A stretch of DNA of 64,000 nt from assembly GCF_032062105.1 (NCBI RefSeq), contig NW_026940419.1:1-64000 (forward strand), read 5' to 3'. The notes beneath the pieces are model-generated. The model made no database searches. It was not told where the DNA came from and saw only the letters and a list, made by a program, of their open reading frames with translations. Below are positions 14,345-47,136 of the stretch, in pieces. Numbering within the stretch: the first letter of the stretch is position 1; every line of letters starts with the position of its first letter. The translations under genes and the position numbers were made by a program. The stretch is from Saccostrea cucullata (taxonomy: Eukaryota).

Positions 14345-15234
14345 CCTTCCATTCCTATCACGTGGTTGTCAATGTATGCCTGATATGATAAAAAAAATTT
14401 AAATAACAAATATAAACATACATGTGTAAAATATTTCGTATAAAACGTGCAATCCATTATAAAAAACCTAAGCCCCCATGGTCAAATGTACTGACGTTTT
14501 TAAAAGTCCGATGCATGTGGTCACTCCCAAGTCCGATGGCTTGTTCCCTACCAAATTTAGGATCCCCTAAACTCCATATTTTTAAAATTAAAATCCTTTA
14601 CAACTTATTTCGTCCCCTACTTCCAGCTACTAACCCAATGTGAATACTTCGTTATGTAATAATTTAAGAAACAGTATTTTGCCGTGGACATGTCCTCAGT
14701 CATTCTCACCATCGTTTTGCTCAACATCACATCTGATAATAAGATTTTTATCCAAAAGTACGAGGGTCTACAGTAACATATGTCACTATACAATCTTTAG
14801 ATTAATCAACAGATCGACCGTATTTTTTCTATGTACAATTGACCGTATTCCTTCTGCACGTTGATAGACCAATTTCCCGCGTTTATGTCACATGTAAACG
14901 AGAAAATTGAAATACAGGTTCAAGCATTAAATTTCCGGAAAAGGAACATCTCAAGTGTTTTTGTCCATTAACGTGAAATATGAACAGAATGCATTGAATT
15001 TACAATTGATTGAACACAATGAAATAATTATAAAACAAACAAGAGTAACAGAAGACAAAGTTCAGTTAATAATACATGTGTAAAATATGTATATGTCTGA
15101 CATTATACAGTTATATATTACCTAATGCGTAGGTTTTGTTTTTTTTTAATTTTAGGTCTCCTTTTTGTTGTTAAAAGGAAATCGATTTCATTTAATGATT
15201 ATCTGTTGGATACAGTTATTCCTGTGCTAATATA

Positions 15235-27112: not shown

Positions 27113-28560
27113 TTATTCCTGACCTCGACCTCTACCAGGATGTGAATCTAGTCTATTTCGTCGACCTTTACCAGGATGTGAATTGAATTTAGCTTGTCGA
27201 CCTCTACCAGGATGTGAATCGAATTTATCTTGTCGACCTCTACCAGGATGTGAATCGAATTTATCTTGTCGACCTCTACCAGGATGTGAATCGAATTTAT
27301 CTTGTCGACCTCTGCCAGGATGTGAATTGAATTTATCTTTTCGACCTCTACCAGGATGTGAATCGAATTTATCTTTTCGACCTCTACCAGGGTGTGAATC
27401 AAATTTATCTTGTCGACCTCTACCAGGATGTGAATCGAATTTATCTTGTCGACCTCTACCAGGATGAGAATCGAATTTATCTTGTCGACCTTTACCAGGA
27501 TGTGAATCGAATTTATCTTGTCGACCTCTACCAGGATGTGAATCGAAATTGTTTTGTCGACCTTTACCAGGATGTGAATTGAATTTTTCGTCTCTCCTTT
27601 ACCAGGATGTGAATTGAATTTGTCGTCTCTCCTCTGACCGGGACGTGAATTTAAGTTATCTCGCGGGCCTTTACCAGGACGAGAATCTGGTTTATCTTTC
27701 CGACCCTTTCCAGGGTGAGAATCGGATTTCTTTGTACCAAGACGAGAAGTTAATTTATCTTTCCCTGTATCCTTTTGACTTTTTGGGTTAACATCCGGTT
27801 TTTCCTGATGACTTCCCGAATTTAACTTGGTTTCCAAGTCACCGATTGCCCATGGGGTAGGAAAATCGCCATTTTCTCCGAAAAAGTGTCGGAATAGGTC
27901 TCTCTCGTTAAATTTCTTTGAATCATTGATTTTCACAGGGCCCTTTTCATTTTTCTCTGAAATATGAGCTTAGTGTTTATTTTCGATACGTATTTTTTTT
28001 CCTTCTAAATTTTAAATCTGAGATTGAAATATTTGATCACATGACAACTATAAATATTCATGTAAATATCAGGTTGAAAATTATTTAAGGAAGCTCTAAA
28101 CACTAACAAGGACTTGGGAGAAAAATATCTGACGTAAAGGTGTACATATTGAGACTTTTTCATCATTTATAAAATAGGCTACCTGCCTTATTCCTGCATG
28201 AAAAATGTTCAAGGACAATGGACTATTTGTGAGCTGAAATCACTGCTGATTACTTACATTGGGAAAATAAATTAAAATACTAGTAATGAGTTAAATTATT
28301 TATTCTTGGTCTTATATAATGTTAAAACATTTTATTTTAATACAAATCGTTTAATTCACAGTAAATTAGTAAATAACTTTTTTTTCAATTTACCATTTTA
28401 GTTGAGCAGAGTTTAGAGCTTTCTTATCGACACTTATATATTACACGTTTTAAATTCATATTTTTAAAAAAAAAAAAAGTAATGGGTCAATTCAGTAATC
28501 ATTAATACCTTGACAAGAAACAAGAATGAGGAAATAAATCAGGAACACAATTCTCCACAT
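27113..28560 (-). CDS. secreted repeat protein 'A' (signal peptide plus 12-aa SHPGRGRQDKFD repeats); apparent 1-nt frameshift at about 27598-27600
   Basis: Exon 28560-28509 encodes MWRIVFLIYFLILVSCQ(G) with a phase-1 GT donor. Exon from 27956 (TTCAG| acceptor) reads EKNEKGPVKIND... The frame-corrected end is ...HPGRGRGQE* with the stop at 27113, about 298 aa. As assembled the ORF shifts to INSIHILVEVDK repeats and stops at 27148. AATAAA at 27001-26996. Confidence 0.72.
27125..27745. repeat. 36-bp coding tandem repeat (about 14 near-perfect plus 3-4 diverged units)
   Basis: ACCAGGATGTGAATCGAATTTATCTTGTCGACCTCT recurs every 36 bp from 27134 to 27566, followed by one 35-bp step to 27601 and then diverged units. 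Confidence 0.95.
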
Positions 28561-28768
28561 TTCCTCTATAACAAGAGGTTACCGTTGTTATGAAGAATAT
28601 TAGAGTTATCTTTCTTTTCCTGCAAAAAATTTTTGAGAATTTTGAGAATTAGATTTATGTTTACATTTTTTGTTATAATGATTGCGACACTATCGTTACA
28701 TTTCTTTATGCTTCTCGGACATTGTCGACTGAATTTATGTATATACTGGTATCTGATAAGAACCCCTC

Positions 28769-29161
28769 GCCCGCGTGACGCAGTGGTTAGAGCGTCTGCT
28801 CACAGGCACTTGTTTCGGGAATGAATTTAACCCATAGTATTATAATGTTATTGTACCACTATGGGTCAAAAATTTATTACAGAAACAAATGCCTGTGCGT
28901 CTTCTCTAGAGTCGCGAAGTAAGGAGTTGATCCTTACGTCGCGGGTTCGAATCTCACTGAGGGATGTGGAGACCGCGATGCTTTAATGACACCGTATAAC
29001 CGAGGTCCTCTGTTGCAGTAGGTGTTGACGCGAAAAAGATCCCTCAAGGCTCAATGGCTCTGAGTGACGAGCATAGGACAAAATTTGCAGCGCTCCAACG
29101 GCAGGTGGTGGCGTCTCCATATGAGTGAAAAATTCTCGAGACAACATACAATCAATCAATC
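28769..29161 (+). mobile_element. tRNA-derived SINE (interrupted by a 97-bp MITE), in intron 1 of gene A
   Basis: A box TGACGCAGTGG (28776), B box GGTTCGAATC (28944). The 3' part GTCTCCATATGAGTGAAAAATTCTCGAG is shared with copies at 53.5, 56.7 and 63.8 kb. (CAAT)n tail. Confidence 0.85.
28801..28897. mobile_element. 97-bp foldback MITE with 8-bp TSD (P- or hAT-type)
   Basis: TIR CACAGGCACTTGTTTC / GAAACAAATGCCTGTG. Inner IR ACCCATAGT / ACTATGGGT. Flanks CGTCTGCT (28793-28800) and CGTCTTCT (28898-28905). Confidence 0.8.
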
Positions 29162-29202
29162 AGTCTGATAAATGCCACTTTTCTTTCACCAATACGGGTA
29201 TT

Positions 29203-29630
29203 TATTATGCGGCCGGATTGATAGATCCGGTACGTTTATTGTTTTTGTCCTGTCTGCCTGATTGTCTGTTTACCTGTTTGTCTGTCTGTCTGTTGTCTAC
29301 TTTAAACTTAGCCATAACTTTTGAACCGTGAGATATAGAGACTTCATATTTCAAATGCATACTCCTCTAATAAAGTTCTTTCAAATAACACCAAGGTCAA
29401 TGACCTTGTGATCTTGACTGTGACCTATATGCTAAAAACTTTCGCCATAAACTTTGAATCAAAGAAGATAGAGACTTCATAGTTAATATGCATACTCCAC
29501 TCATTAAGTTCTCCCAAATGACACCAAGATCAATGACCTTATGACCTTGACTGTGACCTATATGCTGAAAATAGATTTTTCAAACGTTGTTGCCGCCGGG
29601 CGCATAGTGTTTCACAAACACATCTTGTTT
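29203..29630 (+). mobile_element. HINE-type element with (CTGT)n microsatellite and two ~130-bp internal repeats
   Basis: 5' stem-loop CCGGAT..ATCCGG and TGTC microsatellite. Duplicated ...GATAGAGACTTCATA...CAATGACCTT.TGACCTTGACTGTGACC... unit. 3' palindrome GTGTTTCACAAACAC followed by a T-run. Confidence 0.7.
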
Positions 29631-30074
29631 TAAAATGTTCTTAGCATAAAATTACCCGCTGTATGATTTGTAGCTTTGGTAGATATTGTTTCCAGAATAT
29701 AATTACACTATAAATGAAAGCATTTACTTTGAACAGCCGACAATGGATAGACAATAAAATGAAAGGGAGGGGATCCACTAAAACTGCCTGTACCGTAAGA
29801 AAGTACGATATATTTTGTCATTAATCTCTACACAAAAAGTAACTATTGTAACGCAATATTTATGATGAATATATTGCAGAAAATTCTTAATAAGTGTCGG
29901 AAACACTACTTTATTATAATGTAATCTTTGAAAACTCGAGAATCTAGTATGGAAGTAAGTACTATGCTTTGAATATTGTAAATTTCTGGTTTCTGGTTTA
30001 CAAACATATTAGGTTGTTTGTACTTTTTTTAAAAGACAATTTTTTTGAAAAAATAAAAAGGTAAAGAATCTTAC

Positions 30075-30142
30075 CTGCTCAAAAATCCTGCATTTAGGCC
30101 TTGTGTTATTAAAACCACAGTTAGAGAAATTTGATATTTATA
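30075..30142 (-). promoter_or_regulatory. TATA box and non-coding first exon of gene A
   Basis: TATAAATA at 30142-30135, donor CAG|GTAAG at 30075. Same layout as genes B, C and D. Confidence 0.5.
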
Positions 30143-30256
30143 AGAAAACTGTGGGTGTCAGTCGTGGCCTAGTCACACCTAGTTACATATCACTTCATGC
30201 TAATTATATGTTTTGTTGTGTTTCATGCATATTTAATGCAGATAAAAACAATACTC

Positions 30257-30595
30257 TAGGCCATCATTAAAAAAATTGTTTTTTGGAATTGCCGCCTGAA
30301 GGGTTTCAGATACAGGAGGGAGGGAGGGAAATTATTATTTTTTTAATTGAAGATAAATTTTAAATTTTTGATAAAAATCTCAGTAAACAGTAAATACAAT
30401 TTCTGACTTTTAAGATCTGACACTATATTTCAGCGTTTTGTATGGTGCATGTGATACATGTAAGGGGCAACAACATTGATTAAATAGAAGAAAAAAAAAT
30501 CTTCCTACTTTTGGTCAATAACATTTTTTTCAGGAGGGGGCATTTCAATGAGGCTGGAGGCAATTCCAAACAAACTAAATTTTATTTTGGCCCTA
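30257..30595. mobile_element. MITE with imperfect TAGGCCA...TTGGAATTGC terminal inverted repeats
   Basis: Left TAGGCCA..AAAAAAATTGTTTTTTGGAATTGC, right GCAATTCCAAACAAACTAAATTTTATTTTGGCCCTA. Confidence 0.55.
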
Positions 30596-30729
30596 TTAGA
30601 TTGTTTATTACAGGCCCAAGGAAGCGGTCGTTACATGTACGTATTCATGTAGATTTGCGCTTGTGTTTTGTATTTTAGAGAGAGAAGGGGGGTTGATGAA
30701 AAACTAGTACTTTTCGTTCTAAGTGCATT

Positions 30730-31140
30730 AGAGGTGGGATCAGGTGCCTTAAAGTAAAGCATCGCCTTCATAATGGATAACAACCGCCGTGTGGTACTTG
30801 TTCATAATCGAGAGAAAAAAATCTGTCAAACATTCTGTTTGTAAATAATATTCTATCAATATTAGTAGGAAAAACGTCAGTCAGCATTTGACTTATTAGT
30901 GATAGATTTCCTTTGCTTACAAGGTCATTGTATAAACGAGTCCGCAGGTGTGAATCATCTACTTATTTGTGTCAAAAGCTTGCCTGAGTTGCGTCGTTTT
31001 AAGAAATTGTACGTACATGTAGAGCATAATCTTGCATATTTAGTCATCTGGAAGACAAAATTCAAATTCTTTAAAACAGGTGTGTCATATTGCGTGGTAT
31101 CTTTTATTTTAATTTCACTGTACGTAACAGGCATATCTTC
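30730..31140 (-). mobile_element. highly decayed Penelope-like retroelement fragment
   Basis: GAGGTGGGATCAGGTGCC...CCGCCGTG and AAAACGTCAGTCAGCATTTGAC...CAAGGTCATTGTAT blocks are shared with the 42 kb and 45 kb copies. Confidence 0.55.
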
Positions 31141-31673
31141 GGGATCGGTGTCAAAAACTACCTTGTTTTATAATTGTGGCTCTTTGCATGCAGATGCTCC
31201 GCCTTGCAGTGTCCTTGTTATGATATTTACAACTAACGACATTTCCAACAGAACTATAGTTGTTGTGTGAAGAACTTGAACACGTAGGAGGATTATATTT
31301 CATATGTTTAATGTCTGTGTCCTCTACAAAAACTTGAATTTTTCAATTAAAATTTGTAAAATTTAAATTTTTGTAGAGTACATAAGCACTGAATGATTTT
31401 TTTTGTAGTTGAAAGGTGTTGAAGCGATATTGAAAACTATGCTCGATAACTTACATGTTTGAAAAATATTAAACATTTGGATAATTAACGCAAACGCTTT
31501 TAGTTGATATTGAAGACAAGGAATCCTTTATTTTATGAGCAAAATTTACGAAAACATGGTATAGTAGTCATATACCTCATTGTTAAAATGAGCAATGCAA
31601 TGTTCTAAATAAATCAAGGTCTTTCATCTTCGACGGAAGACCTTTCTGTTATTAATAGGTTTCTTTTCCACAG

Positions 31674-32248
31674 TTTTTAGCTCTACTGGTCAGAGACCAG
31701 AGGAGCTTATACGATAGTAATGCGTTCGGCGTCCGTCCGTCTGTCTGTCTGTAAGCAATTTGTCAAAATGCTACTCCTCCTACAGTTACAATATAACTTG
31801 GCAACAAATACACAAGTAGACTACAATAAGATACATAATTTTGTATATCGATTTTTGATTTTGATGAACGGTGTTGCCATGGTTACTAAAAATAGAAATT
31901 TCTGTGAAATACTTTCAAAATGCTACTCTTCCTATAGTTTTGGTCTGATTTCATTATAATTTGGCACACAAGTAGACTATACTAATAACATAATTCCGTG
32001 TATTGGTTTAGGATTTCATTGAATGATGTTGCCATGGTTGCTAAATTTGAAAATACTGTAAAAGTTTATTTAAAACTACTCTTACAGCTGTAATCTTATT
32101 GCAGTATCTTGCCACAAAAAGAGCTCAATCAAGCATCATTATTCTATTTATTGCTGTTGTAAAGTTTCAAGTCCCAACTGCTTCTTTTCTATTCATTTGT
32201 TATTAGTACAGACCAGTAGAGCTTCAGTCTCGACAGAGACTTCTGGTT
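31674..32248 (-). mobile_element. second, shorter copy of the pearl/CvA-like element (about 2.5 core repeats)
   Basis: Reverse complement of the 2626-3656 termini: TTTTTAGCTCTACTGGTCAGAGACCAG... and ...ACCAGTAGAGCTTCAGTCTCGACAGAGACTTCTGGT. Same microsatellite and core. Confidence 0.88.
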
Positions 32249-32433
32249 ATTATTTGTTTTCTGACATAAATTTGTGCACATTCTCGTTAACAGCTTGCTC
32301 GATTTTCATGAAACGTTCAGGACTGATAGAGCATAAAAAAAAAACTAGACATATAGTTTTTGTTTTAATGACGTAACTTTCGGTTCCGAGATTTTTGCAT
32401 TTGAATGAATTTTTCGGGGGTTAGTTTGTCCGC

Positions 32434-32464
<31 letters not shown>

Positions 32465-33140
32465 AACTTGAGTTTTTCAGCAATGATAGAACATTATACT
32501 ATAGTGTACATGTAGATGTGACATACGTATTTCATTTTCACCGGAATTACTGCACGCCGACGCTCGCTATGGTTCGAAAAAAGGCATATGGAGAATTTTT
32601 AAATTTCTTACACTTTTTCAATGATATCTTTTTACCTAGAAACTAATCAATATACGCCTACACTCAGCAACTTTTCAAAATAAAACTTTCAAATTGTATT
32701 CACAGAAGAAAAAAGAAAAGAAAAGAATGAAAATATGCTAACAACCTCAATGTTCTATTTGTTTTGTTTTCTTGTTTGTGTCTTTACACAACATTTATAA
32801 CATGCTACTAGCTGGCTCTAATATGATAGATCGTCATTGATTTTTAGGTTAAGGGTCCCGCTACCAAAGTCCGAGGAAAAAAGTAAGGTTAATATTGTTT
32901 CAGTAACTAGGTGTATATAAATTTTTTTTAAATAATTGAACCGTTTTTGTTCACACAAACCATTCCTTGCAACTTTCATTATGTAATATGTCTATGATCT
33001 ATCGAAGAAGAGGTAGCTATAGTTTGAGAATTTGTTTTCCTATCATCACTGTTAAGCTTGACCTAGTAGGAAATATAAAGTATCTGTCATCTGTTACTCC
33101 TCTATTTACATACATTAAAAGATCGATAAAAAAGATTTTT

Positions 33141-33525
33141 GGCACTCGGAGTTCCTCGGATGACTCGTACCTCGCACATAACCTCGGACGTCAACGGTGA
33201 TCTACCATCTTGCTGATTCAGTCATGTGATCTTATTTGAAATTCTTTCAAATTTCATACATTTGAAATCAAAGTTAATTTGTGGCACACGCAACAGTTTT
33301 TTCTTGCTTTCAAAGCATATTAACTTGAGGCTGTAATCAAAACCTGTCTACGATCAAGAATTGTACAAATTAAGAAACATTTTCGAAGAACGTTATGCAG
33401 AGCGCAATATGAAATGAGTGATAAGGCAGTTTCCGGCGGAGAAATGTAAGGATCTGATGCGTATTCCTCCACTAATCACATCCGAGGTTTGAATGGAGCG
33501 TAGCGGAGTCAGCCGAGGATTGCCG
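33141..33525. mobile_element. putative MITE with ~45-bp imperfect TIRs
   Basis: CCTCGGATGACTC...AACCTCGGACGT at left versus ACATCCGAGGTT...GAGTCAGCCGAGG at right. Confidence 0.45.
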
Positions 33526-33618
33526 ATTGGATTTTTGGTGTCAAGGTGTCAACAACATAAATCCTCGACTCACTCACCCCTCGGGCAGTTGAACGTTACA
33601 CTTGCTGATGTATAGTAT

Positions 33619-34075
33619 TATTAGTCCTCTACCGGTGAAATCGGAGGGGACTATAGGTTTCCTCTGAGTCTGTCTGTTACGCTTTGGGGCCCATCTATTA
33701 TCCGCAACTCTTCTACCACTGGATGAAATTGATAAGAATTTCACAGAATCTTTGTTACTAATATATATATATAGTGCTATTATGTACATCCTATTTTACA
33801 TTTTGATCAGATACATATTTTGGGTATCCCAGAGCAAACCATGAACATGGCCATTCTGTCTAAAATATTAAATGGTACCTATCTGTTATCCGCAACTCCT
33901 CCTATACCACTGAATAAAATCTAACGATACTAGTACTTTCACAGATGCTTTATCAAATGCCATTGTGCACCTCCTATTTTACCTTTTGATATGACACTAT
34001 TTTCGGGTCATCCAACGCAAAACACGGGACTTTGCCCTTATAACCAGAAGGGAGGCGATGTATCATTTAGTGTAT
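33619..34075 (+). mobile_element. HINE-like element; related fragments in both orientations at about 36375-36575 (-) and 36885-37080 (+)
   Basis: 5' stem-loop TAGTCCTCT.CCGGT..ATCGGAGGGGACTA and CTGT microsatellite. The unit TTATCCGCAACTC(C/T)TCT..ACCACTG.ATGAAAT is repeated twice here and again at 36.4-37.0 kb. Confidence 0.55.
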
Positions 34076-34811
34076 CTATTTTTTTTTTATTAAGTCCTGC
34101 TTTAGATGAAATTAAAAATTGTTGGCTAGTGAAGGGGCACAATGAGTGTCTTATCTCTATAAGCGAAAACCAGAAATCCAAGTTAATGAATCAGATGAAA
34201 ATGGTCTAAAAAATTTTTAAGCAGTTTTACTTTGTTGTATTCTCTTCTGTTCTAGTTTTTTTTATTCTCTTGAAATTTTGACAGCTATAACTTCCATATG
34301 TATATAAGGATAAATTCAGTAAGATTTTTCATTGTGGTGATTTTGAAGTCGCATAGAATGAATAGTTGGTTAAACCATGCATGTTCTCAAGATATGACAA
34401 TTTTTAGATGTACCTGAGTACGACGTACGGCTATAACCTAAAGAACAAATCTCACACTTGAAAATTATTGTATCATTTTATTCAAGAGGGTGACATTTAA
34501 GGCAGGGAGAAAAACATGATTTTTAATACAGCTAGAGAAATATAAAATGAAGTCCCATTTTACAACTAATACACATGTATCACCCTTTTTATAAGCTCAT
34601 TTCCCCTGCTTTTCAATATCATTTTATATATTAACCAGGCGGCAAGTACCAAAGTTTTCATTATTTTTAGCAATATCCTTAAATATAACTAATTTTATGA
34701 AAGAGTTCTGTTCAGTGGCTGAATTTGATCCCAATTCCGTTATCTTTCCCTTGTCAGAACTAGTTTCAAACGTGTTCTGGTGTGTTTTTCTCATATTATT
34801 ACTTTGCTCAA

Positions 34812-35714
34812 TTACATTGGTCCATCTGTTCTCTTTCCAAACATTTTCATTATATTCCTTCGGAGTTTCTCTTGAATTTTTCTTTGAATAGCGCGGAATT
34901 TTCTCCAGTTCTTCCTTCGTAGTCTTATGTAAGTTCCTTTTGGTTTGCTGTTGTTGACACTGGGAAAAAATTGACTAGCTGTATCTTTATCTACATTTGA
35001 TTCTGGTGGATCATAGTTTTTTTGAGTATCATTCTTTGATAAATTTTCCACTCCTTTCGCTTTTGGTGTAGTTAATTTGAGGTTTTTGGAAAGACTGGAT
35101 TCTTCCTTCTTATATGTTTGGTTCTGCATTGTGCCACTGTCTTTTTGTTTCCAGTTCTTTGTTCTACCGAGTTGACGCGTAAACACTGGAGATGGACAAT
35201 AAAACATGCATTTCATTAATTACCCATCAAAGGATTAGATTAATAGAAAATTAATTTAAATTTGTTCAAAATATAATCTTTTAAATAATAAAATGTGTAC
35301 GTGTTTCTGCAAATCGGTTTCTTCTTCCAATGTTTAATTTGGATTTTAAAGCATCCCCCTGTTCTCTTCTTCCAACAGGATGCGAGAACTTAAGAGATTC
35401 TAAAAGAAAGGACATTATTTTCAACAGTGTTTACAAATCAATTATCTGAAGACATATTCAAAGAATTTCCACCATTATAATATTTACTTATTCTGTCATT
35501 CTTTTCTTTTCCATTTTCAGCAGCTGTGTCAGATACCACAGAATCTAAAATTACACGCAGAGGACAACTGTTGTAAAGGTCCATGAAAACTTAAAACTCA
35601 GAATTTTTTTCAGTTCTGACATATTTTTTTTATCCACTTTAAACTGTATTAAGTACCTTTGGAGTAGACAAAGATGATGCACTGCGAATACAGAATTATT
35701 ACCCATGTTCTCAT
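34812..35714 (-). CDS. secreted Lys/Asn/Ser-rich protein 'B' with a basic C-terminal helix; 195 aa as assembled
   Basis: Four coding exons 35714-35657 (MRTWVIILYSQCIIFVYSK), 35544-35488, 35399-35301 and 35185-34812. All introns are GT-AG and phase 1, with internal exons of 57 and 99 nt. Ends RLRRKNWRKFRAIQRKIQEKLRRNIMKMFGKRTDGPM*. Confidence 0.68.
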
Positions 35715-35972
35715 TATGCCTACAAAGAAGACATGGTTATTTATACATATACATTCACTTTTTCTTAGATCAAAAAGCATTAAAATCAATTTATTTAAAC
35801 CAGTTTAACTCTGAATTTATATATTCATTAAATTCATTAAATTATCTCTCTTACATGTTTCAAGAAATATTCGTTGTTTTTAAAGCGTGTCGAGCATGTT
35901 ATGTTATCGATGTATGGAAGTTTTTAAATCTACAAGATTGGATATGACTTAGAAATTAACTCATTAACTTAC

Positions 35973-36041
35973 CTTTCTTTCGTGTGATTTCCTATATAGG
36001 TACGAAAAGATTGATCCTGCAAAAAATATAACTACTTTATA
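35973..36041 (-). promoter_or_regulatory. TATA box and non-coding first exon of gene B
   Basis: TATAAA at 36041-36036, donor AAG|GTAAGT at 35973. Confidence 0.5.
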
Positions 36042-38280
36042 TGAGAGCCGAGGGTGTTTTGACTTGGTCACATTTTGATCAATGACTTTGTCAGTTTTGT
36101 CATATGTTAATTAAGACGTTACTGGTTTTATACGAACGTGCATAACTAATAATAAATGTTGCGAAAATATCAATTAAAACAAAACGGGGGATATTGTGGG
36201 CAATGGCCTCACTAAATAATACCCCTGTCTGCCAAATGTTTATTAAGGCAGCAAAGCCTATGTTTTGCACTGAAAGATCTGAAATGAGAGTAAGATCAAA
36301 AAATAAAATAAGAGATGCAAAATGGCTTTATGTAATAAAGAATCTTTGAAAGTATCATTATATTTTATTCAATGGTATAGGAGGAGTTGCGGATAAGAGA
36401 TGGGTACCCTTCAATATTACAGAAAGAATTGCCGTGCTCATGCTTTACTCTGGATACCCAAAATATGTGTCTGATCAAAAGGTAAACTAAGAGGTCACTA
36501 TGGCACTGTATAACAAAGACTCTCAGAGAGTCTCAATAAATTTCATTCAGTGGTAGAGGAGGAGTTGCAGATGAGATATGTAACCCCCCGGGCATATGTA
36601 ACCCCCCGATCACTACATACCCTCCCACTTTTTCAAGCTGGGGGGGGGGGGTGTATAAATATTGCGAAAATATCGATAAAAATAAAATCAAAAGGACGGA
36701 TAAGAAAGTCCACAAATTTGCTTTAAAGTCACGGAGTAAGGAGTTGACCTTTACATAGTGTGTTCAAATCCTACTTCGGGACGTGGACCTTCTATTTTTT
36801 TACTTTTTATCCGACACATTTTTTTTGGGTGCCCCATAGCTAAACACGTACACTGTCATTCTTACAGTGTACTACAATACTGAAGGGTACCCATCTCTTA
36901 TCCGCAACTCCTTCTATACCACTGAATGAAATTAAATGAGACTTTCACAGATTCTTTTTACGTAGTGCCATGTCCACCTCATTTTCGAGTTTTTGATAAT
37001 TTATTTCGGGTCTCCCGAGGCAAAACATGAACATTGACATTATAAAGAAATGGGAGGTGAGGGTATCATTTTGTGAGCTCATTCATGTTTACCTAAAATT
37101 CCATAAACAAAAGAGCTTTGTGCCTTTGAAGAGCTTTATTAAGATGCAAATGACTTTGAGTGTTCTTGAACTAGAACTCGTAGTAATTTGAATAATGATG
37201 AATCTTACCATCAGTTAGTGATGAATTTGTGTCAAAACTATCTGTCGATATATCTTCAAACGAAAATATGCCACTATGTCACACATTGCTTCATTTAGCT
37301 CGAGGGGTATTAAGGAAATCTAGACACTGGACAGAAGTGAAAATTTTTCATCAATTATCATTCATTTACTTGCCTCAAGTTAGATTTTTGTCAGCATTAA
37401 ACCGATTTTTAACAGCATAACTGTACTAATAAAATATCTGTCATATCTATTATGAAAGATATTTATGGTGTAGAAAATATAACCTTGAAACTAGACAAAA
37501 ACTTCAATCAAAATCATCGAAGATTATGCACATCGAACCTATGGAAAAGCTTTGTATTCTGTTGTTAATCTAAACATTGTACAACTAATAGTCTTCAAAC
37601 AAAGAACACAAAGTTACTTCAGAGAAATGTATTGTATTAATTTAACCTCTTTATTAAGATCTTTACCAGTTTGTTTTTTTTCAAAGAAAATGTGCAAGTT
37701 ATAAAAATGTAATCACATCTGATAAATACCTTTGAAAGGTAAGCTGAATTATCAATACCAATTCAAAAGTCTGCCATACAATTGGTTAATGTATTGATCA
37801 TACATAAGACACAGTTATCATTGAATATGTTTCAGTTTATTTAGAACATGTACCTTACAGTCCTTCCTTTCCAGTCATGCCTTTTCTGCCATTAATTCAA
37901 TATTAATCACAATAGTTCCCAGTAACGCATTAGTATAATGCAACTTATATCTCAGAAAAATTGCATAGCTAAATACATCATGTCCTTGGACAAAAATTAA
38001 TTTCATTTGAATAAATTACTTTTATGCATTGTCATTTCGTAGACCAGTAAATATATACACTTGTGTAATCGATATCTTTGTCTTGTTCCATAAGTCACTT
38101 GCAACATTTTAACAAAATTGAAACTTGTAGCACTGACACAAAACGTAAATTGCAATGAAAAGCACAAAACGAAGCAAAACACATAAAATTTTGGATTTCG
38201 CCTTAAGTGCGTCTTTGGATCTACTGACCAAGACAGTTACACGTAGTCAAAGGAAGTTTGTTGGCGTCCATTTGTTTCCA

Positions 38281-39103
38281 CTAATATCTTTTTCCATATT
38301 GTCTGTGTGCCCTTTGTTTTCTCCTTTGGTTCCTCTTGTGTTTCCTCAGGGCCTTATTTTTTAGTTTCCTTTGCCTCCTTTTGTGTTTCTTTATCGTCTT
38401 CTTTATTTTCTTTTGCACCTTCCTCTCATTCTTCCTGAGTCTTCTCTCGTGTCTGTTCGGTCCTTTTCCGTATTTTCTAGGATTGAGATGAGGGTCGACA
38501 TGAGGTCTAATTGGTACGTGTGGTTCTGGGAAATCTATAGGGTGGCGACCTTGTATATCTGGACGGAGTGAATCAGGAAAACGACCACGAGGTCCTCTGT
38601 GATTTTGCACACCCCTGTTGACAAGATCACGTAGTCTATTTATTCCTTGTTGTGGCCGATCAATACCCCCGTCCCATGGTCCCTGTCGACCTGGGACAGT
38701 TCTGGCACCCCAGGGAGCGCCACCTACACCTGGTACCGGACCCAGGGGTTCTACATTCCAGGGGTCAACTCCATGACCTCCATGTGTATCGTGTCCATGA
38801 CCTCCATGTGCATCGTGTCCATGGCCGTGGTCCCCATCTACAAAAACAAAACCAACAACCAATTATTCTATAATTTGGCATACTGTCAGTCTTCGAGAGT
38901 ACGTAGCATACGTTTTAAGAAACAAGAGACAATTCCATCGTATATTTTCCAATGTTCATTTTTATTTTGATGTGATATATTTTGTTTAAATTTGCGATTT
39001 ATGCATTTTATATAAATTATCAAGACTTTTTTATGTACATGTACTTACGTATTTGACCTTGAGTTCCCAGCAAACATGCTGCCAAAACTATGAAGGAAAT
39101 CAT
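38281..39103 (-). CDS. secreted His/Gly-rich, Pro-rich protein 'C' with a Lys/Arg-rich tail; 203 aa
   Basis: Exon 39103-39049 encodes MISFIVLAACLLGTQGQI with donor |GTAAGT, phase 1. Exon 38837-38281 follows TTTTGTAG|. The two total 612 nt in frame. Contains GHGHDAHGGHGHDTHGGHG; 30 K/R in the last 54 residues; ends YGKRY*. Confidence 0.85.
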
Positions 39104-39224
39104 CCTACAAAAAAGAGATAAAAACATAAATTCTGGCATTGTGAAAATGTTTCATCATTGCTACAGTTTTCAATAAGTTTTTACGAACAATTAATTATTC
39201 ATGATAAGGAATAAGATTTCTTAC

Positions 39225-39286
39225 CTGTTGATATTCCACAAATGTTCTGACTGTAGATGTAAACCAAGAATACTGTTATATATATA
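39225..39286 (-). promoter_or_regulatory. TATA box and non-coding first exon of gene C
   Basis: TATATATATAA at 39286-39276. Exon ends GAATATCAACAG|GTAAG at 39225. Confidence 0.6.
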
Positions 39287-41056
39287 CTATCCCGTAAGAG
39301 GAAACATTTGTAAAAATGTCATTTATAGACATATGTTGATAAGATAATTAGACATCTTTTAAATTTGCTATTTATGGACAGAGGTAGAGGGAAATCCAAA
39401 AACCATATCCTAGTTTGACATTTTATACGTAGTATTTCAAATTTTTTTTAAAAACTTTCAAAGTTTTCGAACGAAACATTGCGTTTAAATGTTATTCTGT
39501 GTATTATTTGTGGTTTGCACCTATCAAATCCAAATATTTACATAGATCTTTAATGCATAATAAATAAAAACACGTAAATTTTTGGACGAATCTGTACTTG
39601 TTTAATTATTATTGATTTAAAATCAATTGATGACATACTCAATCTACATGTACGTCACAGAGTTTTGATTGGAGAATCTTTTTCTTTCTCCAGCGCGATA
39701 TTGATGAATGTACATGTAATTAAACATTAACATAATACACCAATGATAAAGAGATTCAGCAAAACTAGGGGGATTCCCTGGAATATTGCTACATTCTTAT
39801 TCCTTAATCCGAACCTGTGAAAAATAAGTGAGTGTGCAATCTACATTTTTAGTATGTCGAACTTTTGATGGTTGATAAAGCACGATGATATTAGTTTAAT
39901 TTTAATTTGAATTTCCTTTTTAAAAAAAATCGGGTTACTTTTTTCACTCTAAATCAATACATATTTCCTAGAAATTGCTCTTGCTGCTTGTTAAGAAATA
40001 CTGGTATTTGAATAAACTTACCAAGTGTGAATAATGGCAGCAAATACAGCTTTAACAATCGCAGTGAAAATAGTCCGCAAGTTCTATAAGGACCACACTA
40101 ATTAAGAAATACAAATCAAATCTGTTGTTTCTGACATTTTTGACATTTCATTTTGGAAATCTTGTTTGTTTGATGAATTCAATTTAAAGTAACATAATTT
40201 CTCTTTCTATGTTTGAAGGATAAATTTTTGTAGGTCTCACTAGTTTTTCACCTGACAATCAGCGTGTCTTAGTGAGAGCTTTCTGATTTTTTTCCTGGTT
40301 TGGTTGGTTTATTTATAATTGAAAAGAGGTTTGAAAATTTAGTACGTCCTCTCTTAATTGTCTTCTCTGATGGAGGTTAAACTTATTTCTAGAGACTGAT
40401 TAAAATATTGGGGTAGATTTTCGACTGCACTTTAAATATATTTTACAGTATTGTATAGTGTTAAGTGCATTGTATCTCATTTATTCTCATATGTACAGAA
40501 CTGTTGTGGCTTTTGGTCTCATATAAGAAATTCATTATCCGAAATAAAACTCTTGAAAATCTTTATATCTAAATCAATTGCATGCACCTACTTCTATTTC
40601 TTTATGCCACACAACGCTGTAAAATTCAGTAAGAATTCAATTACTGTGATATGGTCAATGAATTAAAAAAAATGAATGAATAAATAAGAAAATTAATTAT
40701 GGTCTTAAGTCAATGACAATTTTTTTACTATACAGATTAATCAAATATGTTCTGTTGTCTTTTGTTTACAAGTCACTGAATGGAATGTTGTCGTGCATTA
40801 ATTACAGAACAATGGAAATGTGAAAGAGAAGAGACCGCAAACAATTGTTATACGTCATACTGATACTTATTTCCTGCAAACTATGTCAAACCAAAAAAAA
40901 GCACAGAGAGAGAGAGAGAATGAAAGAAAGAGAGAGAGAGAGAACATAAATACACAGAATTTGTTATTATATATTTTTAAAAATGGGACGTTCGCATCAG
41001 TCTTTCATTTATTTTAGATTTGCCATTTTTCTTATATTATGTTATGGCTTATGGTT

Positions 41057-41311
41057 TATGAGATGCCGTTTAAATATTTTTAAGGTATTTTCTGATATCA
41101 AAAAATCATTTTGTGATATCAAAAATTCGAATTTCTGATATCAGAAAATCATTTTTTTGATATCAAGAATTCGAATTTATGATATCAGAAAATGATTTTC
41201 TGATATCAAAAAAATCTATTTTCTGATATCAAAAAAATCTATTTTTTGATATCAAGAATTTCTTTTTTAATATCAGAAAATTCTTCAAAAATATTAAAAC
41301 GGCGCCTCATA
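41057..41311. mobile_element. MITE with an internal array of TGATATCA palindromes
   Basis: TIR TATGAGATGCCGTTT.AATATTTTT / AAAAATATTAAAACGGCGCCTCATA. About 9 copies of (T)GATATCA spaced 21-24 bp. The terminal TA could be the TSD. Confidence 0.75.
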
Positions 41312-42169
41312 ATGATTGCAGTATTATTTCAGGTAAATTACTTATATACATTGGTATGTATAAATTTAGAAAACTAACATTGTAAATCGGTATTTGGCGA
41401 GAATGTTTATCAGGAATGCTTTGTCTAAGTATGCACCAAATTAATTTTCATGCATTCTTTTTTGCAAAACAGAATTATAAAAAGACGGAGTAGAGCTTCT
41501 TGATGTTATATATCAAGTTATAAATATTTAATAAAGAGCTAGAACATGTTGGTGTCTTTTTTTTCATGTAAGAAAAAATGTTGATTTAATTTTGTCTTTG
41601 TTTTTAAAGATGGATTAAAATGCTTGGAACAAATACAGATTTTCATATTAGCAGGTGGAAAAATACAAATAGGAAATTATAGATCAACTCAGGAAAAAGG
41701 AAACACAATGTGTGAACACCATGAGACCACTAACAGATAACTAGTGAATCTTATTGGACAAAGCCTCTATACCAGAACTTATCAATCTTATTGGACAAAA
41801 GAAAACCAGAACTGCAAATCTTCTAATGGATACCTTCGACGTCAAGACTGGTCAATGTTTTATGGTAGTAATGATATGTCAATGGTGTTGGGAATTTCTC
41901 AAGGTCACAATGAGGTATTTTGAATGTGATGGGACTCCTTAGAAATACGTAAGCGTAGTCATAAACATTTTAGACTTTAAGTCTTAAACAATCCTATTTT
42001 TTACGATTTCCCTTTTGATTCACCATTGCTAGTTAATTCTTCATTGAATATGCACCAAACTTCACTCGGCTAATTGCAAATCACATTTATTTAAAAATTG
42101 CATCATTTTACGATAAAAAAAGCGCCTAATCTTGCAATCTCTTATGATTCAAGTTTAAATACATTTCTT

Positions 42170-42800
42170 GCATCCCCTGCCCACCGGTTTCACCCGCCGT
42201 GTGCTCCTTGTCATGATCAGGAAATATCGGAAATATCCGCTGTCAACCTAATTCGTCAGTCAGCATTTCACTCAATGATAAATTGTATTAGCTGACAAGG
42301 TTATTGTATCGTCCATAGAACTCAGAAATTATTACTTTAAACGAGACTGCTGAAATTATTGTTTCATCAACTTGTTTGTCGATAATTTACCTCGTTTTAG
42401 AAATTTGTTCATACGTAAAGCATTATCTTGCGTATCAACTGAGATATATATAAACTCCGTAAGCAGGTGATGAAGGTGTATTGCTGCATATAAAAGTAAG
42501 GCAAGTTGACGATAGGATAGACAAAGTCATCACGTTTATCATAAAGCTTGCTTGTTAGATAACCATTGACGTCTTCTTCAAGAAAAAAAATCAAAATATG
42601 ACAGAAATGTGTCAGACTCTGTGGTATTATTTTTCATCTCAAGCTCACCAGGATATATCGTATCGACTTAGGAATGGAAATTACCATTGTTAATTGATAA
42701 CACGTCGTTGATAAATCTAAATGTCGAGTTGATGGCCACAACAAGTGTTTTCTTCTTTTCACGCATAAGATTTTGCACAAATTGTGCTTAATTCAGAAGT
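42170..42800 (-). mobile_element. Penelope-like retroelement RT C-terminal remnant (pseudogenised)
   Basis: Decayed frames reading TFRFINDVLSIN and GYLTSKLYDKRDDFVYPIVNLPY...YISQLIR. Terminal block GCATCCCCTG..ACCGGT..CACCCGCCGTG. Confidence 0.75.
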
Positions 42801-44085
42801 GAAAAAATAACATGATCAGCATGTTTTGTGGCCCCAGCTGGCCATAGGAAGTTTAAAACAACTAACCACACTCTGCCCTTTTCTGTTTTTGTAAGGCTTG
42901 TAGAGAGGATACAGGAGTTTATGTCAGTTGATTTGAATGGCATGAGCATGCTGTAGATACATGTGTGTTAATTTCTAAAATGAGGAAAGCTATTGACAAA
43001 TAAGTTGATTCAAAAGAATATTAAAAGTTCTGTTTAAAGTTAACATTTCGCAAATTCTTTGGTCGATACAATGGGACTGTAAGCAAATATATAATTTTTT
43101 TTTAAAAGCGAATGTACGAACTCTTCAATAAATATTGTTAGACATTATTTTCACATTTGTTTTGTTTGTCCGATGACGACAAGGACCACACGGCGGATGT
43201 TACCGGTCCACGGGGGTTACTTCCGCTTCATGATCCTGTTTGATGCTTTTAGAGATCCGTTTTGTTCTGCTCCAATTTGTTTCATTCCAAAAGACTTTGA
43301 AGTTTAAATACAGGTCATTATCTTTATTTTTTTATTTTCAACAAACAAGAAAGATCATTGGTTTAACAAAACAATAGATATATAAGAATAACAATCTTTA
43401 TTGCACAAGGCATGCATTTTATGTTTGTTATATTAAGGCAATATAACAAACATGAAAAATAGATTGTGTGACATGGTAATATAAACATATGTAGTATATG
43501 ATGTTAGGTTGTCATCAACTTCTTAAATAAATGTATTATATACAGTTTGACCTTATACATTAGGCAGAAGATCATTTTGTGACACTTTCACGTACTTCAA
43601 AGGCATGTTGAGGGTAGAATCTGTACCTACATTGTAGATGGCACAGTTCCTTGACTTTTTTTTATCTAGACTGAGCAGCTGTATTAATCTGAAAACGGAA
43701 GGCTTTTTGTTCCCGTAACATTGATTAATTTTATTGACATGTTATTTCTAAATTTAGGATATATTAAAATAAAATGAACTTCATTCTCAATACATGTATC
43801 TAATTATAAATGACAGATTTAGCTACTGGTATTTAAGGACCATATTCAATAGGTCTTTTAAAAGATGACATACATATTCTACGTAATTACTCCTTATATT
43901 TGATAGGAATAACTTGCGTAATAAAAAAACATTAATTATAAAATAAAATAAAAACATTCATTAGGGATATGGCACAAGAATTTCATCTACATCTACCAAA
44001 TGATATTCGATATGAAAGTCATTTCAATGAGAAATTACTCTTAGATATTTCATAAGCATTAAAAAGAAGGACCTTTTTATTCTAG

Positions 44086-46637
44086 CTAGTCATCTCTATA
44101 CTGAGCATATGGGCTCTGTAACATTTTCCATCTCTGCATTTGTTTCTTTAATGCTTTCTTTTTATTCTTTCTTTGTTTCTCTAGGGCTTTTCTTATTTTC
44201 TTTTGCAGTTTCTTCTTATTTTTTCTCAAGCGTTTACCGAGTCCTCCATGTCTTTTACCAGGCTTTAGAGGTTTCTGAAGGGGGCCAATATGAGGTGTCA
44301 AAAGTGGATGTTGGTCTGGGTAATGGATGGGTCGAACTCCATGTGTACCTGGTCGGAGTCGTTCAACCCTGTTCAGGAGACGATCAAAATTTGGCGGAAT
44401 CCCATTTTTAGCAGAGCCTTTGCGAAAAATTTCACGAATATTTTTCAGTCTGTCCAGAGTATGTGGTGGTAAAGACCTAATTTTATCTAACAGCTTTGCA
44501 TTCATACCACTTCCCCATTGTCCTGGTTTGAGCCTCGTATTCCAGAGGGCGCCACCTGTTCCTTCATTTACTGTCCGTACGTTCAGAGGGTGAACACCAC
44601 GGTCCAGGTGTGTTGGTCCTTGTTCTAACGTTCCTTTCTCATCTGTCAACACAAAATATTACTCAGTTTGGCGAAGTAGAAGACGGATAGTGGACTTTTA
44701 CGAGAAAGGCTGACTTTTATGTTGACGACTTACTTTTACACTGGGACATTGAACGGAAACTCTTTTACGATATAAATATTTAGCTCAACATTTCATTCAA
44801 CAAAATAACGGGTTATTTCAAAGCACAAATAAGTTGTCCTTGAAGACAACGACAACCATACTACATGTACCCATAACTCTCGGCCTTCACATTTTAGTGC
44901 CCCTAATACCATTACTATGACCACTAGAAAGGTTTTCTGATCTATTTTCAATTCTGTACCTCCGTAGACGATATAGGTTTAAATGTCCATGTAAACAGTC
45001 AACCGTAAAAGCCAGTGCTTCTCGTAAAATTCCAATAGTAACATGTATTTTCATCATAATTATATCTTCTATGGAGATAATGAACAGTGCCCAAGCTCAA
45101 AATTCCACGAAACAAGGAAATCAGGAGCAGAACGAACACAGACCTCATAAACCTCAGAGGTGGGATTAGGTGCCATGAAGGAGTGAGTAACCCTGCCGAT
45201 TGGTCACACCCACCGTGCACTCCTTGTCATGATCGAGAAATAACGGAAAAATCCATCCACAATTCAGAGTAAAAATAATGACCTTACAGTCAGTATGAAA
45301 AAACGCCAGTCAGCATTAAACTTAAATATAGCTTGTATTTGCTGACAAGGTCATTGTATCGATCACAGAACTCACGAAATGATGATTTTTAACGAGTCTG
45401 GTGATACTCGTGTTTCATTAACTTGATAGTCAATATTTTACAAAGTTTTTGAAATTGCCTACATGTAGTGTATACTCTTGCGTATCGAATCAACTGAAAG
45501 ATATAAACTCCGCATGCAGGTGATAAAGGTAATTATATTGCTGCATAAGTAAAGGAAATTGACTATTGAAAAGTTAAAGGCATCACATATATCATAAAGC
45601 TTTGTTGTTGATTTACCATAAACGTCTTTTTCTAGGAAAATATCTAAATATGAAACAGATGTGTTACACTCCGTGGTATCTTTTCTTTAAGGCTCACAGT
45701 GATATGTTGATATGAATGGAAATAACCATTGTTAATTGACAATACGTCGTCGATATATCGAAATGTCGAGATGAAGGTCACAACAAGTGTTTCCTCCTTT
45801 TTACGTATCAGACTTTGAACAAATTCTGCTTCGCAAGAATACAAAATAAATCTGTTTATAACGGGACGCAATTGGTACACGTGGAAATGGCAACAGATTT
45901 TTGTAAGACCTGGCTTCGGGGCCACCAACCTATAAAAATCTCAGCTCAAAACTCAGCCTCAAATCTCAGAATTATGCCTCACCTGAGATTTTCCAAAAAC
46001 ACTGTGCCACCAACATTTCATAGATTGGTCTCACGTGAGCTGATATTTGAGAAAAATCTTAGATATATTTCCGTTGTCATATGCGGCCTTTTTTCGAAAA
46101 ATGTAAGGATTTGTTGAATCAATGATTGAATTTTCCTTTTATACAGTGGTCTCAAAAAACTGCATAGATATTTTCAATCATAAACTCCAGAATCTTTTCA
46201 ATATAAACGTCAGAGTACTTGCGTGCACAATCAGATTTTTTTTTTATCAAAGTAATTTTGCAGATGACCAATGAAAAGGTTAGTAAATTTACGAGTTCCA
46301 TTTAATTATATTGAAAAAGTAGTTCGCCAGTTGTCAATTTTTAATTTGAAGTACTCCTGCCTGCATTTTTCAAGGTGATTTTTCTTTCAAAAATTTCTAA
46401 CTCACTAATAATCATCGAAATAATAATTTTGATCACTCATTACCAATAATTGTCATACAAAAATAGGAAAACTGACTACAAAATAGATTAATTAAAAAAT
46501 CATAAAATCATGAAAAAAATTAATATAAAAAGTATTTTTAAAAGATGAAATGTTCAGGGCTTTTTATACTTACATTTGCTTATTTCGCCGTACGCGCCAG
46601 CCAAATAACAAGTCGCTAAAACAATGAAGATACCCAT
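44086..46637 (-). CDS. secreted Pro/Gly-rich protein 'D' with a Lys-rich tail, paralog of C; 206 aa
   Basis: Exon 46637-46574 encodes MGIFIVLATCYLAGAYGEISK with donor |GTAAGT, phase 1. Exon 44642-44086 follows GTTGACAG|. The two total 621 nt in frame. Blocks alignable to gene C. Confidence 0.83.
45060..45900 (-). mobile_element. Penelope-like retroelement remnant (RT core to 3' terminal block) inside the intron of gene D
   Basis: LYSCEAEFVQSL...TFISTFRYIDDVLSINNGYFHSY contains the RT YxDD motif, with frameshifts downstream. Terminal block CAGAGGTGGGATTAGGTGCC...GGTCACACCC.CCGTG. Confidence 0.8.
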
Positions 46638-47077
46638 CCTAAAAAAATAGTTTAAATTAATTGTCGAGGACTTAGTGATATTCAAAATGAAACCATCATT
46701 TAATTTAAAGCAGTATGAGCTGCATTTTTGAAAATTTTATTCTGCTGTTAATATTAATGATATTATTTTATGTAACTTAAACCATATGATTAATTAGACT
46801 GAAATAAAGCAAAAGAAAGACCTCTAAATACAATCCAATATACAGTTTTATGTACGAAATCATTATTGTACAGGACGATAATAATGAAATTTTTGATTCA
46901 ATCAAAGCTTATAATTAATTCTTCCATCGCAATCATGAGCAGCATAAGTTTATTTATGTTATTTTTTCTGTCATATTTATTTACAATTTTCCAACATCAA
47001 AGTTGCAGCTCAGGTTGCTTTACACATGTACATGCAAGTCACAAATATAGATAGGTATTCTGCTTAAAAAGTCTTAC

Positions 47078-47136
47078 CCTATATTGATATTCTAGTGCAC
47101 TATATAAGATTTTTGATTTTTGACAATATTTATATA
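47078..47136 (-). promoter_or_regulatory. TATA box and non-coding first exon of gene D
   Basis: TATATAAATA at 47136-47127. Exon ends GAATATCAATATAGG|GTAAG, sharing GAATATCAA with gene C exon 1. Confidence 0.6.

Follow-up and report, generated by a model that had tools for sequence, protein, structure and literature searches.

A conserved cluster of genes for secreted, cationic low-complexity proteins in oysters

Four signal-peptide genes on one strand

Examination of the window, a 64-kb stretch of Saccostrea cucullata DNA that is free of N, revealed four minus-strand genes with ATGs at 28560 (A), 35714 (B), 39103 (C) and 46637 (D). The exons opened by these ATGs measure 52, 58, 55 and 64 nt, respectively, and each encodes a hydrophobic, signal-peptide-like stretch ending in phase 1 at a GT; the ATG positions are the same as those given in an earlier reading made without database searches (the sequence-only reading). 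A scan of both strands for an acceptor, an ATG, an uncharged hydrophobic exon of 46-70 nt and a phase-1 donor returned exactly these four, compared to 0.55 matches per order-2 Markov control, although the criteria were chosen with the genes already known and the scan is a sanity check carrying no p-value. The predicted products are 195-298 aa long, and their mature bodies are basic (pI 10.6-11.7) and free of Cys, as had been described, with 0-2% Tyr and 0-2% Trp. The basic helices quoted earlier for B, C and D were all found, and the C-terminal regions of these three carry a net charge of +12 to +27. The evidence supports A to D as real and conserved genes whose products are secreted and cationic. 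The architecture said to be common to them extends to the signal exon and its phase; B has four coding exons, and A is frameshifted.

Genes C and D comprise the following features.

47078-47136, minus strand: TATA box of gene D with its non-coding exon 1, which ends at 47078; conserved in S. echinata
46574-46637, minus strand: gene D exon for the signal peptide (64 nt), ending in phase 1
44086-44642, minus strand: gene D body exon, completing a 206-aa product; paralogue of C
39225-39339, minus strand: gene C promoter, with the variant motif TCAACATATG at 39339-39330, TTTCCT element, TATA box at ~39286-39276 and non-coding exon 1 ending at 39225
39049-39103, minus strand: gene C, 55 nt of coding sequence in the exon for the signal peptide, ending in phase 1
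38281-38837, minus strand: gene C body exon, encoding a His/Gly head, Pro/Gly/Arg linker, helix 147-201 and C-terminal Tyr-Gly-Lys-Arg-Tyr

Gene C encodes 203 aa (RefSeq LOC134255381, "uncharacterized"). In members of its family a head rich in His is followed by a disordered linker and a polycationic amphipathic helix of 30-65 residues, the amphipathicity of the tail reaching p<=0.005 in all nine members tested. The AF2 model of C predicted helices at 3-11, 82-92 and 147-201, with low confidence for the remainder; the basic helices of the C orthologues and D have a net charge of +17 to +33. The dN/dS of gene C was 0.20 overall and 0.06 in the tail helix, indicating strong purifying selection on the tail. 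Gene D, with a dN/dS of 0.40 against S. echinata, has an intact 95% copy on contig C873, and is apparently unannotated in both Saccostrea genomes. G-K-R and G-R-G-R motifs, to which attention had been drawn earlier, do occur in A, B, C and D but are largely a product of composition, and conservation is limited to the Tyr-Gly at the C-terminus of C. This dipeptide was found at the end of all five C orthologues, where the Tyr is continued in four different ways (G, GK, GKY and GKRY), and the protein terminates in Tyr in three of the five species. A possible function for the C-terminal Tyr-Gly, predicted from the sequence, is that of an amidation signal.

The longest exon series belongs to gene B.

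35973-36110, minus strand: gene B promoter, with the motif TTAACATATG at 36110-36101, TATA box at ~36041 and non-coding exon 1 ending at 35973
35657-35714, minus strand: gene B, 58 nt of coding sequence in the exon for the signal peptide, ending in phase 1
35488-35544, minus strand: gene B coding exon 2, 57 nt; RNA joints 35544/35657 and 35399/35488
35301-35399, minus strand: gene B coding exon 3, 99 nt, opening with the [FY]-x-[HR]-P-[VIL]-G-[RK] motif
34812-35185, minus strand: gene B last coding exon, with a second, degenerate copy of the motif, a linker and a basic helix

Every intron of gene B is in phase 1, and the 195-aa product (RefSeq LOC134255386, XP_062593886) is annotated as "uncharacterized". 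For B and C the RefSeq models agree with those given here. The dN/dS of B was 0.49. The [FY]-x-[HR]-P-[VIL]-G-[RK] motif is repeated at the starts of successive exons in four species. A stretch of 4,801 nt covering B and C was compared with RNA contigs of a related Saccostrea from four runs bearing no tissue label, which were chosen because they contained C. All three coding introns of B were spliced exactly as modelled, the joint 35185/35301 appearing in each of the four runs, and the body exon of C was covered. Expression is thus demonstrated for B and C, the two genes within this stretch, only.

Gene A required a correction of frame.

28699-28745, minus strand: gene A candidate TATA-like site and non-coding exon 1, donor 28699
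28509-28560, minus strand: gene A exon for the signal peptide (52 nt), ending in phase 1
27113-27956, minus strand: gene A body exon, a unique part and then ~17 repeat units
27598-27601, minus strand: gene A frame break, a 1-nt shortfall in a short purine run

The repeat unit is 36 nt, encoding 12 aa of the D-S-H-P-G-R/K-G-R type. Read as assembled, the gene leaves the repeat register near 27599, and when read with X at the frame break gives a product of ~298 aa. The 1-nt shift is probably an error in this assembly, a null allele being the other explanation. A test of silent versus replacement changes among the repeat units could not distinguish the frames, and the frame was settled by the orthologues, called at 392 aa in S. 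echinata and 360 aa in C. angulata; L048 has the same frame and C-terminus. The signal exon shares 15 of 17 residues with S. echinata and 14 of 17 with C. angulata. A word-based search with gene A found no match, a result that is uninformative since the S. echinata orthologue, already known, escaped the search as well. The repeat gave a sub-threshold glutenin match in Pfam and no informative match in the ESM Atlas.

Relationships, promoters and range in oysters

Paralogy can be demonstrated for C and D only (34% identity, E 1e-27), and the proposal that A to D arose by tandem expansion of a single family is therefore not upheld. Comparison of B with the C family gave an hhalign probability of 2.6%, and shuffle tests of this pair were borderline and biased, as any amphipathic basic helix beats its own shuffle. 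Gene A has no detectable relation to C or D. The sequence comparisons thus point to at least two and probably three small families (C/D; B; A).

In B, C and D a TATA box lies 57-69 nt before the first donor, and orthologues keep this spacing; that of B, 69 nt, is equal in S. echinata and O. edulis, and the promoter layout of C is kept in four other oysters. The TATA box and non-coding exon attributed to all four genes are thus confirmed for these three, while those of A are candidates, its DNA similarity to S. echinata being limited to 28486-28626 and the candidate TATA and exon 1 not being conserved there. The sequence TTA[AG]CATATG occurs upstream of the TATA box in five of six C-family promoters of the C-type layout and in the B promoter of S. 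cucullata. S. cucullata C and S. echinata B each deviate from it at one position, and with one mismatch allowed the motif is no rarer than chance. The motif was not found in the D and A promoters. B was found in all four RNA runs, which had been picked for holding C. Co-regulation, proposed earlier for the whole cassette, has modest support from the motif common to B and C-family promoters and from the shared runs; the lack of the motif in D and A speaks against it.

The order D-C-B-A is retained in S. echinata. C. angulata has C, a C-paralogue, a B-like gene and A; O. edulis has C-B; and C. virginica has C plus a paralogue. Order and orientation are kept across three genera, and in another oyster gene A adjoins a TRIM-like gene. 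C appears to have been duplicated locally more than once among oysters, with one or two copies per genome; the C-family tree is compatible with one or with independent origins of the second copies (AU p 0.07-0.43). Neither the genome nor the remainder of the contig yielded further paralogues. C orthologues among the uncharacterized RefSeq proteins include LOC105339576 (C. gigas), LOC128177378 (C. angulata), LOC111129586 (C. virginica), XP_061174468 and XP_048736097, none with an assigned function. The labels "PP1 regulatory subunit 10-like" and "splicing factor 3B subunit 4-like" seem to be driven by composition.

A C/D profile searched against 1.84e9 proteins gave four matches, every one from an oyster. 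As far as detected by sequence, the cluster is Ostreidae-wide and confined to true oysters, a range that fast sequence change may explain; the description of it as lineage-specific holds at the level of the family and not of the species. No informative match was obtained in Pfam (single exons and the C alignment), among PDB sequences, or in the ESM Atlas for C, and the literature searched by ID, run accession and motif did not mention the cluster genes, in keeping with the earlier failure to recognise a family.

Comparison with known secreted proteins

The suggested likeness to mussel myticalins did not extend to gene layout. Myticalins have a non-coding exon 1 with an intron directly before the ATG, an exon 2 carrying signal peptide, mature peptide and dibasic site (PMC5577615), and a hypervariable central mature peptide of 23-47 aa followed, after a Lys-Arg site, by an anionic C-terminal pro-region (PMC5577615, PMC12294457). 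Myticalins also have gill-specific expression and antibacterial activity. The cluster proteins share with myticalins and modiocalins secretion, a Cys-free cationic character, a phase-1 intron and possible amidation (PMC5577615, PMC12294457), and B, C and D also have the intron right before the ATG. In A-D, however, the phase-1 intron comes after the signal peptide and exon 2 stops there; the central mature peptide and the anionic pro-region are absent, the signals depart from the myticalin consensus, the cationic part is conserved (as in the C tail) and copy number is low. We therefore rejected identity with myticalins.

The low-complexity shell-matrix class is matched in a signal-peptide-like start and a low-complexity or disordered body. 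Shematrins have Gly-Tyr (GnY) repeat domains and an RKKKY-type C-terminal signature, and KRMPs are ~10 kDa with a Lys-Trp domain directly after the signal peptide (PMC3896809). Both share with the cluster a signal peptide, low-complexity body, basic C-terminal region and lineage restriction (PMC3896809), and the terminal Tyr of C in three of five species resembles theirs. Identity with shematrins was rejected on the lack of GnY repeats and of an RKKKY-type signature: C ends in G-K-R-Y, basic plus Tyr without being a listed signature, and the ends of A, B and D differ. KRMPs were rejected on length, the cluster proteins being twice the size, and on Trp content, with no Lys-Trp domain. The cluster proteins also differ from both in having a basic amphipathic helix of 45-65 aa rather than a 5-residue motif, and a His-rich head.

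Signal peptides argue against a sperm nuclear basic protein, and this assignment was rejected for that reason. Molluscidin, a short dibasic-repeat peptide without a signal peptide, and Cg-Prp, a short Pro/Arg haemocyte peptide, are likewise Cys-free cationic oyster peptides, and are set apart by these descriptions (PMC5577615); identity with molluscidin was rejected since A-D all have signal exons.

Possible functions

We consider it somewhat short of an even chance that the products are secreted polycations binding and condensing extracellular polyanions, the likeliest site being a secretion of the mantle (shell organic matrix, periostracum or attachment cement), which is the tissue that we infer. 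The genes would be transcribed together from TATA promoters with a common upstream motif, and the signal peptides would send the products into secretory granules. C would lose a few C-terminal residues and receive an amide on Tyr; after release, the basic helices and A repeats would bind acidic matrix proteins, sulphated glycans or the surfaces of mineral and rock, giving a coacervate-like binder, with metal-ion cross-links from the His-rich head of C. Low copy number and the conservation of C, unlike hypervariable antimicrobial families, favor such a role, and restriction to cementing oysters agrees with it. The signal peptide, basic low-complexity body and terminal Tyr resemble in kind those of shematrin and KRMP (PMC3896809). 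DOPA-type glue chemistry is unlikely given the low Tyr content predicted. Lys/Arg-rich proteins are easily lost in trypsin proteomics. The available portions of the shell-proteomics supplements, including the C. nippona shell proteome, contained no cluster IDs or motifs, and other IDs might have been used there.

A cationic amphipathic helix with an amidated end would suit an antimicrobial just as well, which counts against a binder. We regard as unlikely, if credible, a mucosal defence function in which the tails of C and D (and B) act as membrane-active helical antimicrobials, intact or proteolysed; in this case C would be amidated and would bind zinc through its His-rich head. The amphipathic tails (net +11 to +33), the persistence of Tyr-Gly despite its changing contexts, the myticalin-like exon 1 and the local duplications of C are consistent with this. 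An anionic pro-piece that would neutralise the helix is lacking, however, and clean release of the helix is doubtful because the basic pair before it is missing or followed by Pro. Low copy number and strong purifying selection on the tail also argue against defence, A does not fit, and the available portions of the supplements to two haemocyte studies did not contain the cluster.

We consider improbable a role in gamete or gonad secretions, as acrosomal or sperm-surface proteins or spawning cues, for which lysin and the N-terminal part of oyster bindin are basic secreted precedents. In C. virginica gonad RNA-seq, the part of the tables available lists LOC111129585 and LOC111129582 as male-biased (logFC 5.6-7.0) among testis genes; they are numerically next to the C orthologue LOC111129586, adjacent numbers being no proof of adjacent genes, and LOC111129586 itself was not found among the gonad genes listed there (PMC12040131 S2/S3). 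B and D do evolve fairly fast, as their dN/dS values indicate.

It is quite improbable that the genes are neighbours by history only, making separate secretions (mucus, gut, larval) without common control. The absence of a demonstrable relation of A or B to C/D and of the promoter motif from A would suit this, but retention of order and orientation, the motif common to B and C and their presence in the same four RNA runs argue against it. Very improbable are precursors of peptide-hormone or neuropeptide type, from which short amidated peptides (the B motif, A repeats and C terminus) would be released: despite the repetition of the B motif and the Gly-basic motifs in A, dibasic-flanked repeats with Gly were not found, as the B motif lacks an upstream dibasic site and keeps neither its flanks nor its second basic residue, one copy has Trp for Gly, its spacers are basic rather than acidic, and a dibasic pair is missing from most A units.

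Molluscs frequently have clusters of lineage-restricted genes for secreted low-complexity products, and the kind is thus already known; the A, B and C/D families themselves appear undescribed. It is possible, but doubtful, that the cluster is an oyster-specific co-regulated secretion kit in which the C family is a new amidated class with a long amphipathic cationic helix, serving as an oyster-cement binder or as the first bivalve amphipathic alpha-helical antimicrobial, none having been described from a bivalve as of 2025 (PMC12294457). Oyster larval adhesive proteins are not yet known (PMC6337334), and few of the organic constituents of oyster cement, or of the shell layers peculiar to oysters, have so far been well identified. 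The analysis provides a short list of conserved candidates with IDs in a model species (LOC105339576 of C. gigas), together with a gene that is apparently unannotated (D) and a probable error of assembly (in A).

Gene models and their transcripts

A protein database search with the body exon of C (ATG at 39103) returned RefSeq LOC134255381 from S. cucullata (100%) and a S. echinata protein (79%), and the 203-aa protein of LOC134255381 is the spliced model of C. The last exon of B (35714) led to LOC134255386, whose 195 aa are those of a four-exon model of B. With A (28560) and D (46637), these minus-strand genes lie in the first 64 kb, containing zero N, of a 120-kb contig and are flanked by the following genes:

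24729-26450, minus strand: B-box (TRIM-like) gene, intronless, 573 aa, starting 663 nt past the stop of A
56150-58801, plus strand: KY-like gene, Pfam Ig-like_KY

Further along the contig, at about 103498 (L018-L019), is a second long ORF whose start looks similar to that of the KY-like gene.

The four ATGs and their signal exons of 52, 58, 55 and 64 nt, every one ending in phase 1, are present as the sequence-only reading described, and the mature proteins are indeed Cys-free and basic, with pI values of 10.6-11.7. A mechanical scan for such signal exons, using criteria picked with the genes already known, found exactly A-D in 128 kb of strand versus 0.55 in Markov controls. The proposed TATA box and first exon hold for B, C and D, where TATA lies 57-69 nt before the first donor and is mirrored in orthologues; those of A are candidates only. 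The uniform architecture attributed to the cluster breaks down at B, with its four coding exons.

Four runs, drawn from three studies, yielded RNA contigs that match the B and C region at about 93% identity and are therefore assigned to a related Saccostrea. For B they join 35185/35301 in all four runs, and 35399/35488 and 35544/35657 in two of the four, matching the predicted introns exactly. Three of the runs had only been guessed to be RNA, which the spliced joints confirmed. The same contigs cover the body and 3' UTR of C; coming from runs that carry no tissue label, they indicate presence rather than an expression ranking. The C signal/body joint is absent among the listed RNA joints and is backed by RefSeq and by eleven Logan contigs of the C. 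gigas-type orthologue. These eleven (L029-L039, compared with L026:8116-11519 of the C. angulata locus) precisely lack the second intron of C; ten retain intron 1 partly or wholly, and most extend up to 2.1 kb beyond the TATA box. Contigs L021-L023 retain the second intron. The contigs without it may stem from read-through RNA or from an allele that has lost the intron. A 199-aa C. angulata gene called by NCBI (L026:13399-16925) has the length of a C-paralogue signal exon fused to B-like exons; such a fusion is possible because all introns are in phase 1, and would be either read-through splicing or an annotation artefact.

The A frame is short of one base near 27599, with a 36-nt repeat out of register in the S. 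cucullata assembly. A is a basic polyampholyte built of 12-aa repeats. Each of its orthologues can be read in one uninterrupted frame (392 and 360 aa), and in a further oyster contig the A-type repeat frame continues to a similar Gly/Arg end. An assembly slip appears the likelier cause of the frameshift.

Conservation and kinship

The cluster is real and conserved. Order and orientation in S. echinata are D-C-B-A, as in S. cucullata; the C. angulata locus carries C, a second C-type gene, a B-like gene and A; that of O. edulis has C then B; and in C. virginica C is accompanied by another C-type gene within 10 kb. The orthologue models match called lengths of 196, 258 and 148 aa, and A and the TRIM-like gene are also adjacent on a contig from another oyster. 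A profile of C and D searched against 1.84 billion proteins gave four matches, in oysters only (S. echinata, C. gigas/angulata, O. edulis and C. virginica), with no D protein among them. No further copies of A-D were found in S. cucullata. Upstream of C in C. angulata (L026:1-6678) are two tandem genes for Cys-rich single-pass membrane proteins with Pro/Tyr tails, which have no match along the S. cucullata contig; this flank is thus not conserved.

Intact copies of D are present in S. echinata and, at 95%, on the further S. cucullata contig C873. Its dN/dS is 0.40, yet D apparently lacks a gene call in both Saccostrea genomes. Its second intron measures 1.9 kb in the window (44643-46573), about 1.0 kb on C873 (L014) and about 0.16 kb in S. 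echinata (L001:5558-5713), the two S. cucullata copies carrying different repeat insertions.

The genes do not form the single family that had been envisaged: C and D are paralogues (34%, E 1e-27), and A is unrelated to the other three. B resembles C in its basic amphipathic tail, and the two share a promoter motif, but profile comparison of B with the C family (C, D and their oyster relatives) was negative, at 2.6%, and shuffle tests were borderline; a remote kinship is no more than possible. Animal genes for secreted proteins commonly have a phase-1 intron following the signal peptide, and the shared layout alone is therefore no proof of common descent. Relative to C, the second C-type gene is on the upstream side in Saccostrea but on the downstream side in Crassostrea, and the C-family tree is compatible with single or separate origins.

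The exact motif TTA[AG]CATATG has a single site in the window, the B promoter; four C orthologues and one paralogue also have it in theirs. It is absent from A and D. One-mismatch copies, whose frequency is at chance level, are found at S. cucullata C and S. echinata B. Since the C copies share the motif by descent, the independent evidence is B versus C only.

Protein anatomy and proposed function

C comprises a His/Gly head, a Pro/Gly/Arg linker containing a short conserved helix, and a long helix (147-201) that is predicted with high confidence, the remainder being of low confidence. The tails of C orthologues carry a net charge of +24 to +33, and their narrow, heptad-like hydrophobic stripe was significant in 9/9 family members tested. 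Within C, constraint is strongest in the tail (dN/dS 0.06 versus 0.28 in the middle, by a simple counting method on a single species pair). Each of the five C orthologues has Tyr-Gly at its C-terminus, either bare or extended by Lys, Lys-Tyr or Lys-Arg-Tyr, a pattern consistent with trimming and amidation; Tyr-Gly is missing from D and from the C. angulata paralogue. In B, a short motif, [FY]-x-[HR]-P-[VIL]-G-[RK], recurs where successive exons begin.

Drawing on the gene structure, conservation and charge pattern observed, and inferring tissue, processing and binding, we tentatively favor A-D as a co-expressed set of secreted polycations that would bind acidic proteins, sulphated glycans or surfaces in mantle secretion, with C contributing His-metal links. 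The main rival, mucosal defence, seems rather unlikely: a helix that is cationic, amphipathic and amidated follows an antimicrobial design, but an anionic pro-piece is missing, release sites are doubtful and variability is low. The suggested likeness to myticalins fails as membership, on exon content, pro-region and variability (PMC5577615). A gamete role is improbable; two male-biased C. virginica genes (PMC12040131) carry LOC numbers adjacent to that of the C orthologue, which by itself does not place them in the cluster, and the C orthologue was not found in the available part of those lists. That A-D are simply unrelated neighbors we regard as slightly less probable again, and neuropeptide precursors as the least probable reading.

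Compared with shematrins and KRMPs (PMC3896809), the oyster genes fail on Gly-Tyr repeats, Lys-Trp domain and size. A-D gave no match in Pfam, PDB or Atlas; they resemble low-complexity matrix proteins in kind while falling outside any named family. The general kind of cluster is familiar, and its genes are less uniform than first described. No literature naming the A-D identifiers or motifs was found, within incomplete coverage in which older C. gigas studies use other identifiers, and the cluster is apparently undescribed so far. Were C a cement component or a helical antimicrobial, the cluster would be of greater interest.

Other features of the contig

An open frame of 136 codons at 13961-14368 (minus strand), basic and Ser/Pro-rich, has no Pfam match and is probably an internal exon of some further gene. 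Immediately upstream of B is an inverted, dispersed repeat element (36200-37080 and 33690-34070), heavily covered by RNA contigs from other loci and probably a non-autonomous transposon. At 53711-54364 (plus strand), 42254-42789 and 45304-45831 are fragments resembling reverse transcriptase (weak zf-RVT match), together with a duplicated repeat relic. Tandem arrays of 156, 147 and 22 bp occupy 2719-3565, 59365-60809 and 41087-41283, respectively; S. echinata contains copies related to the 147-bp array.
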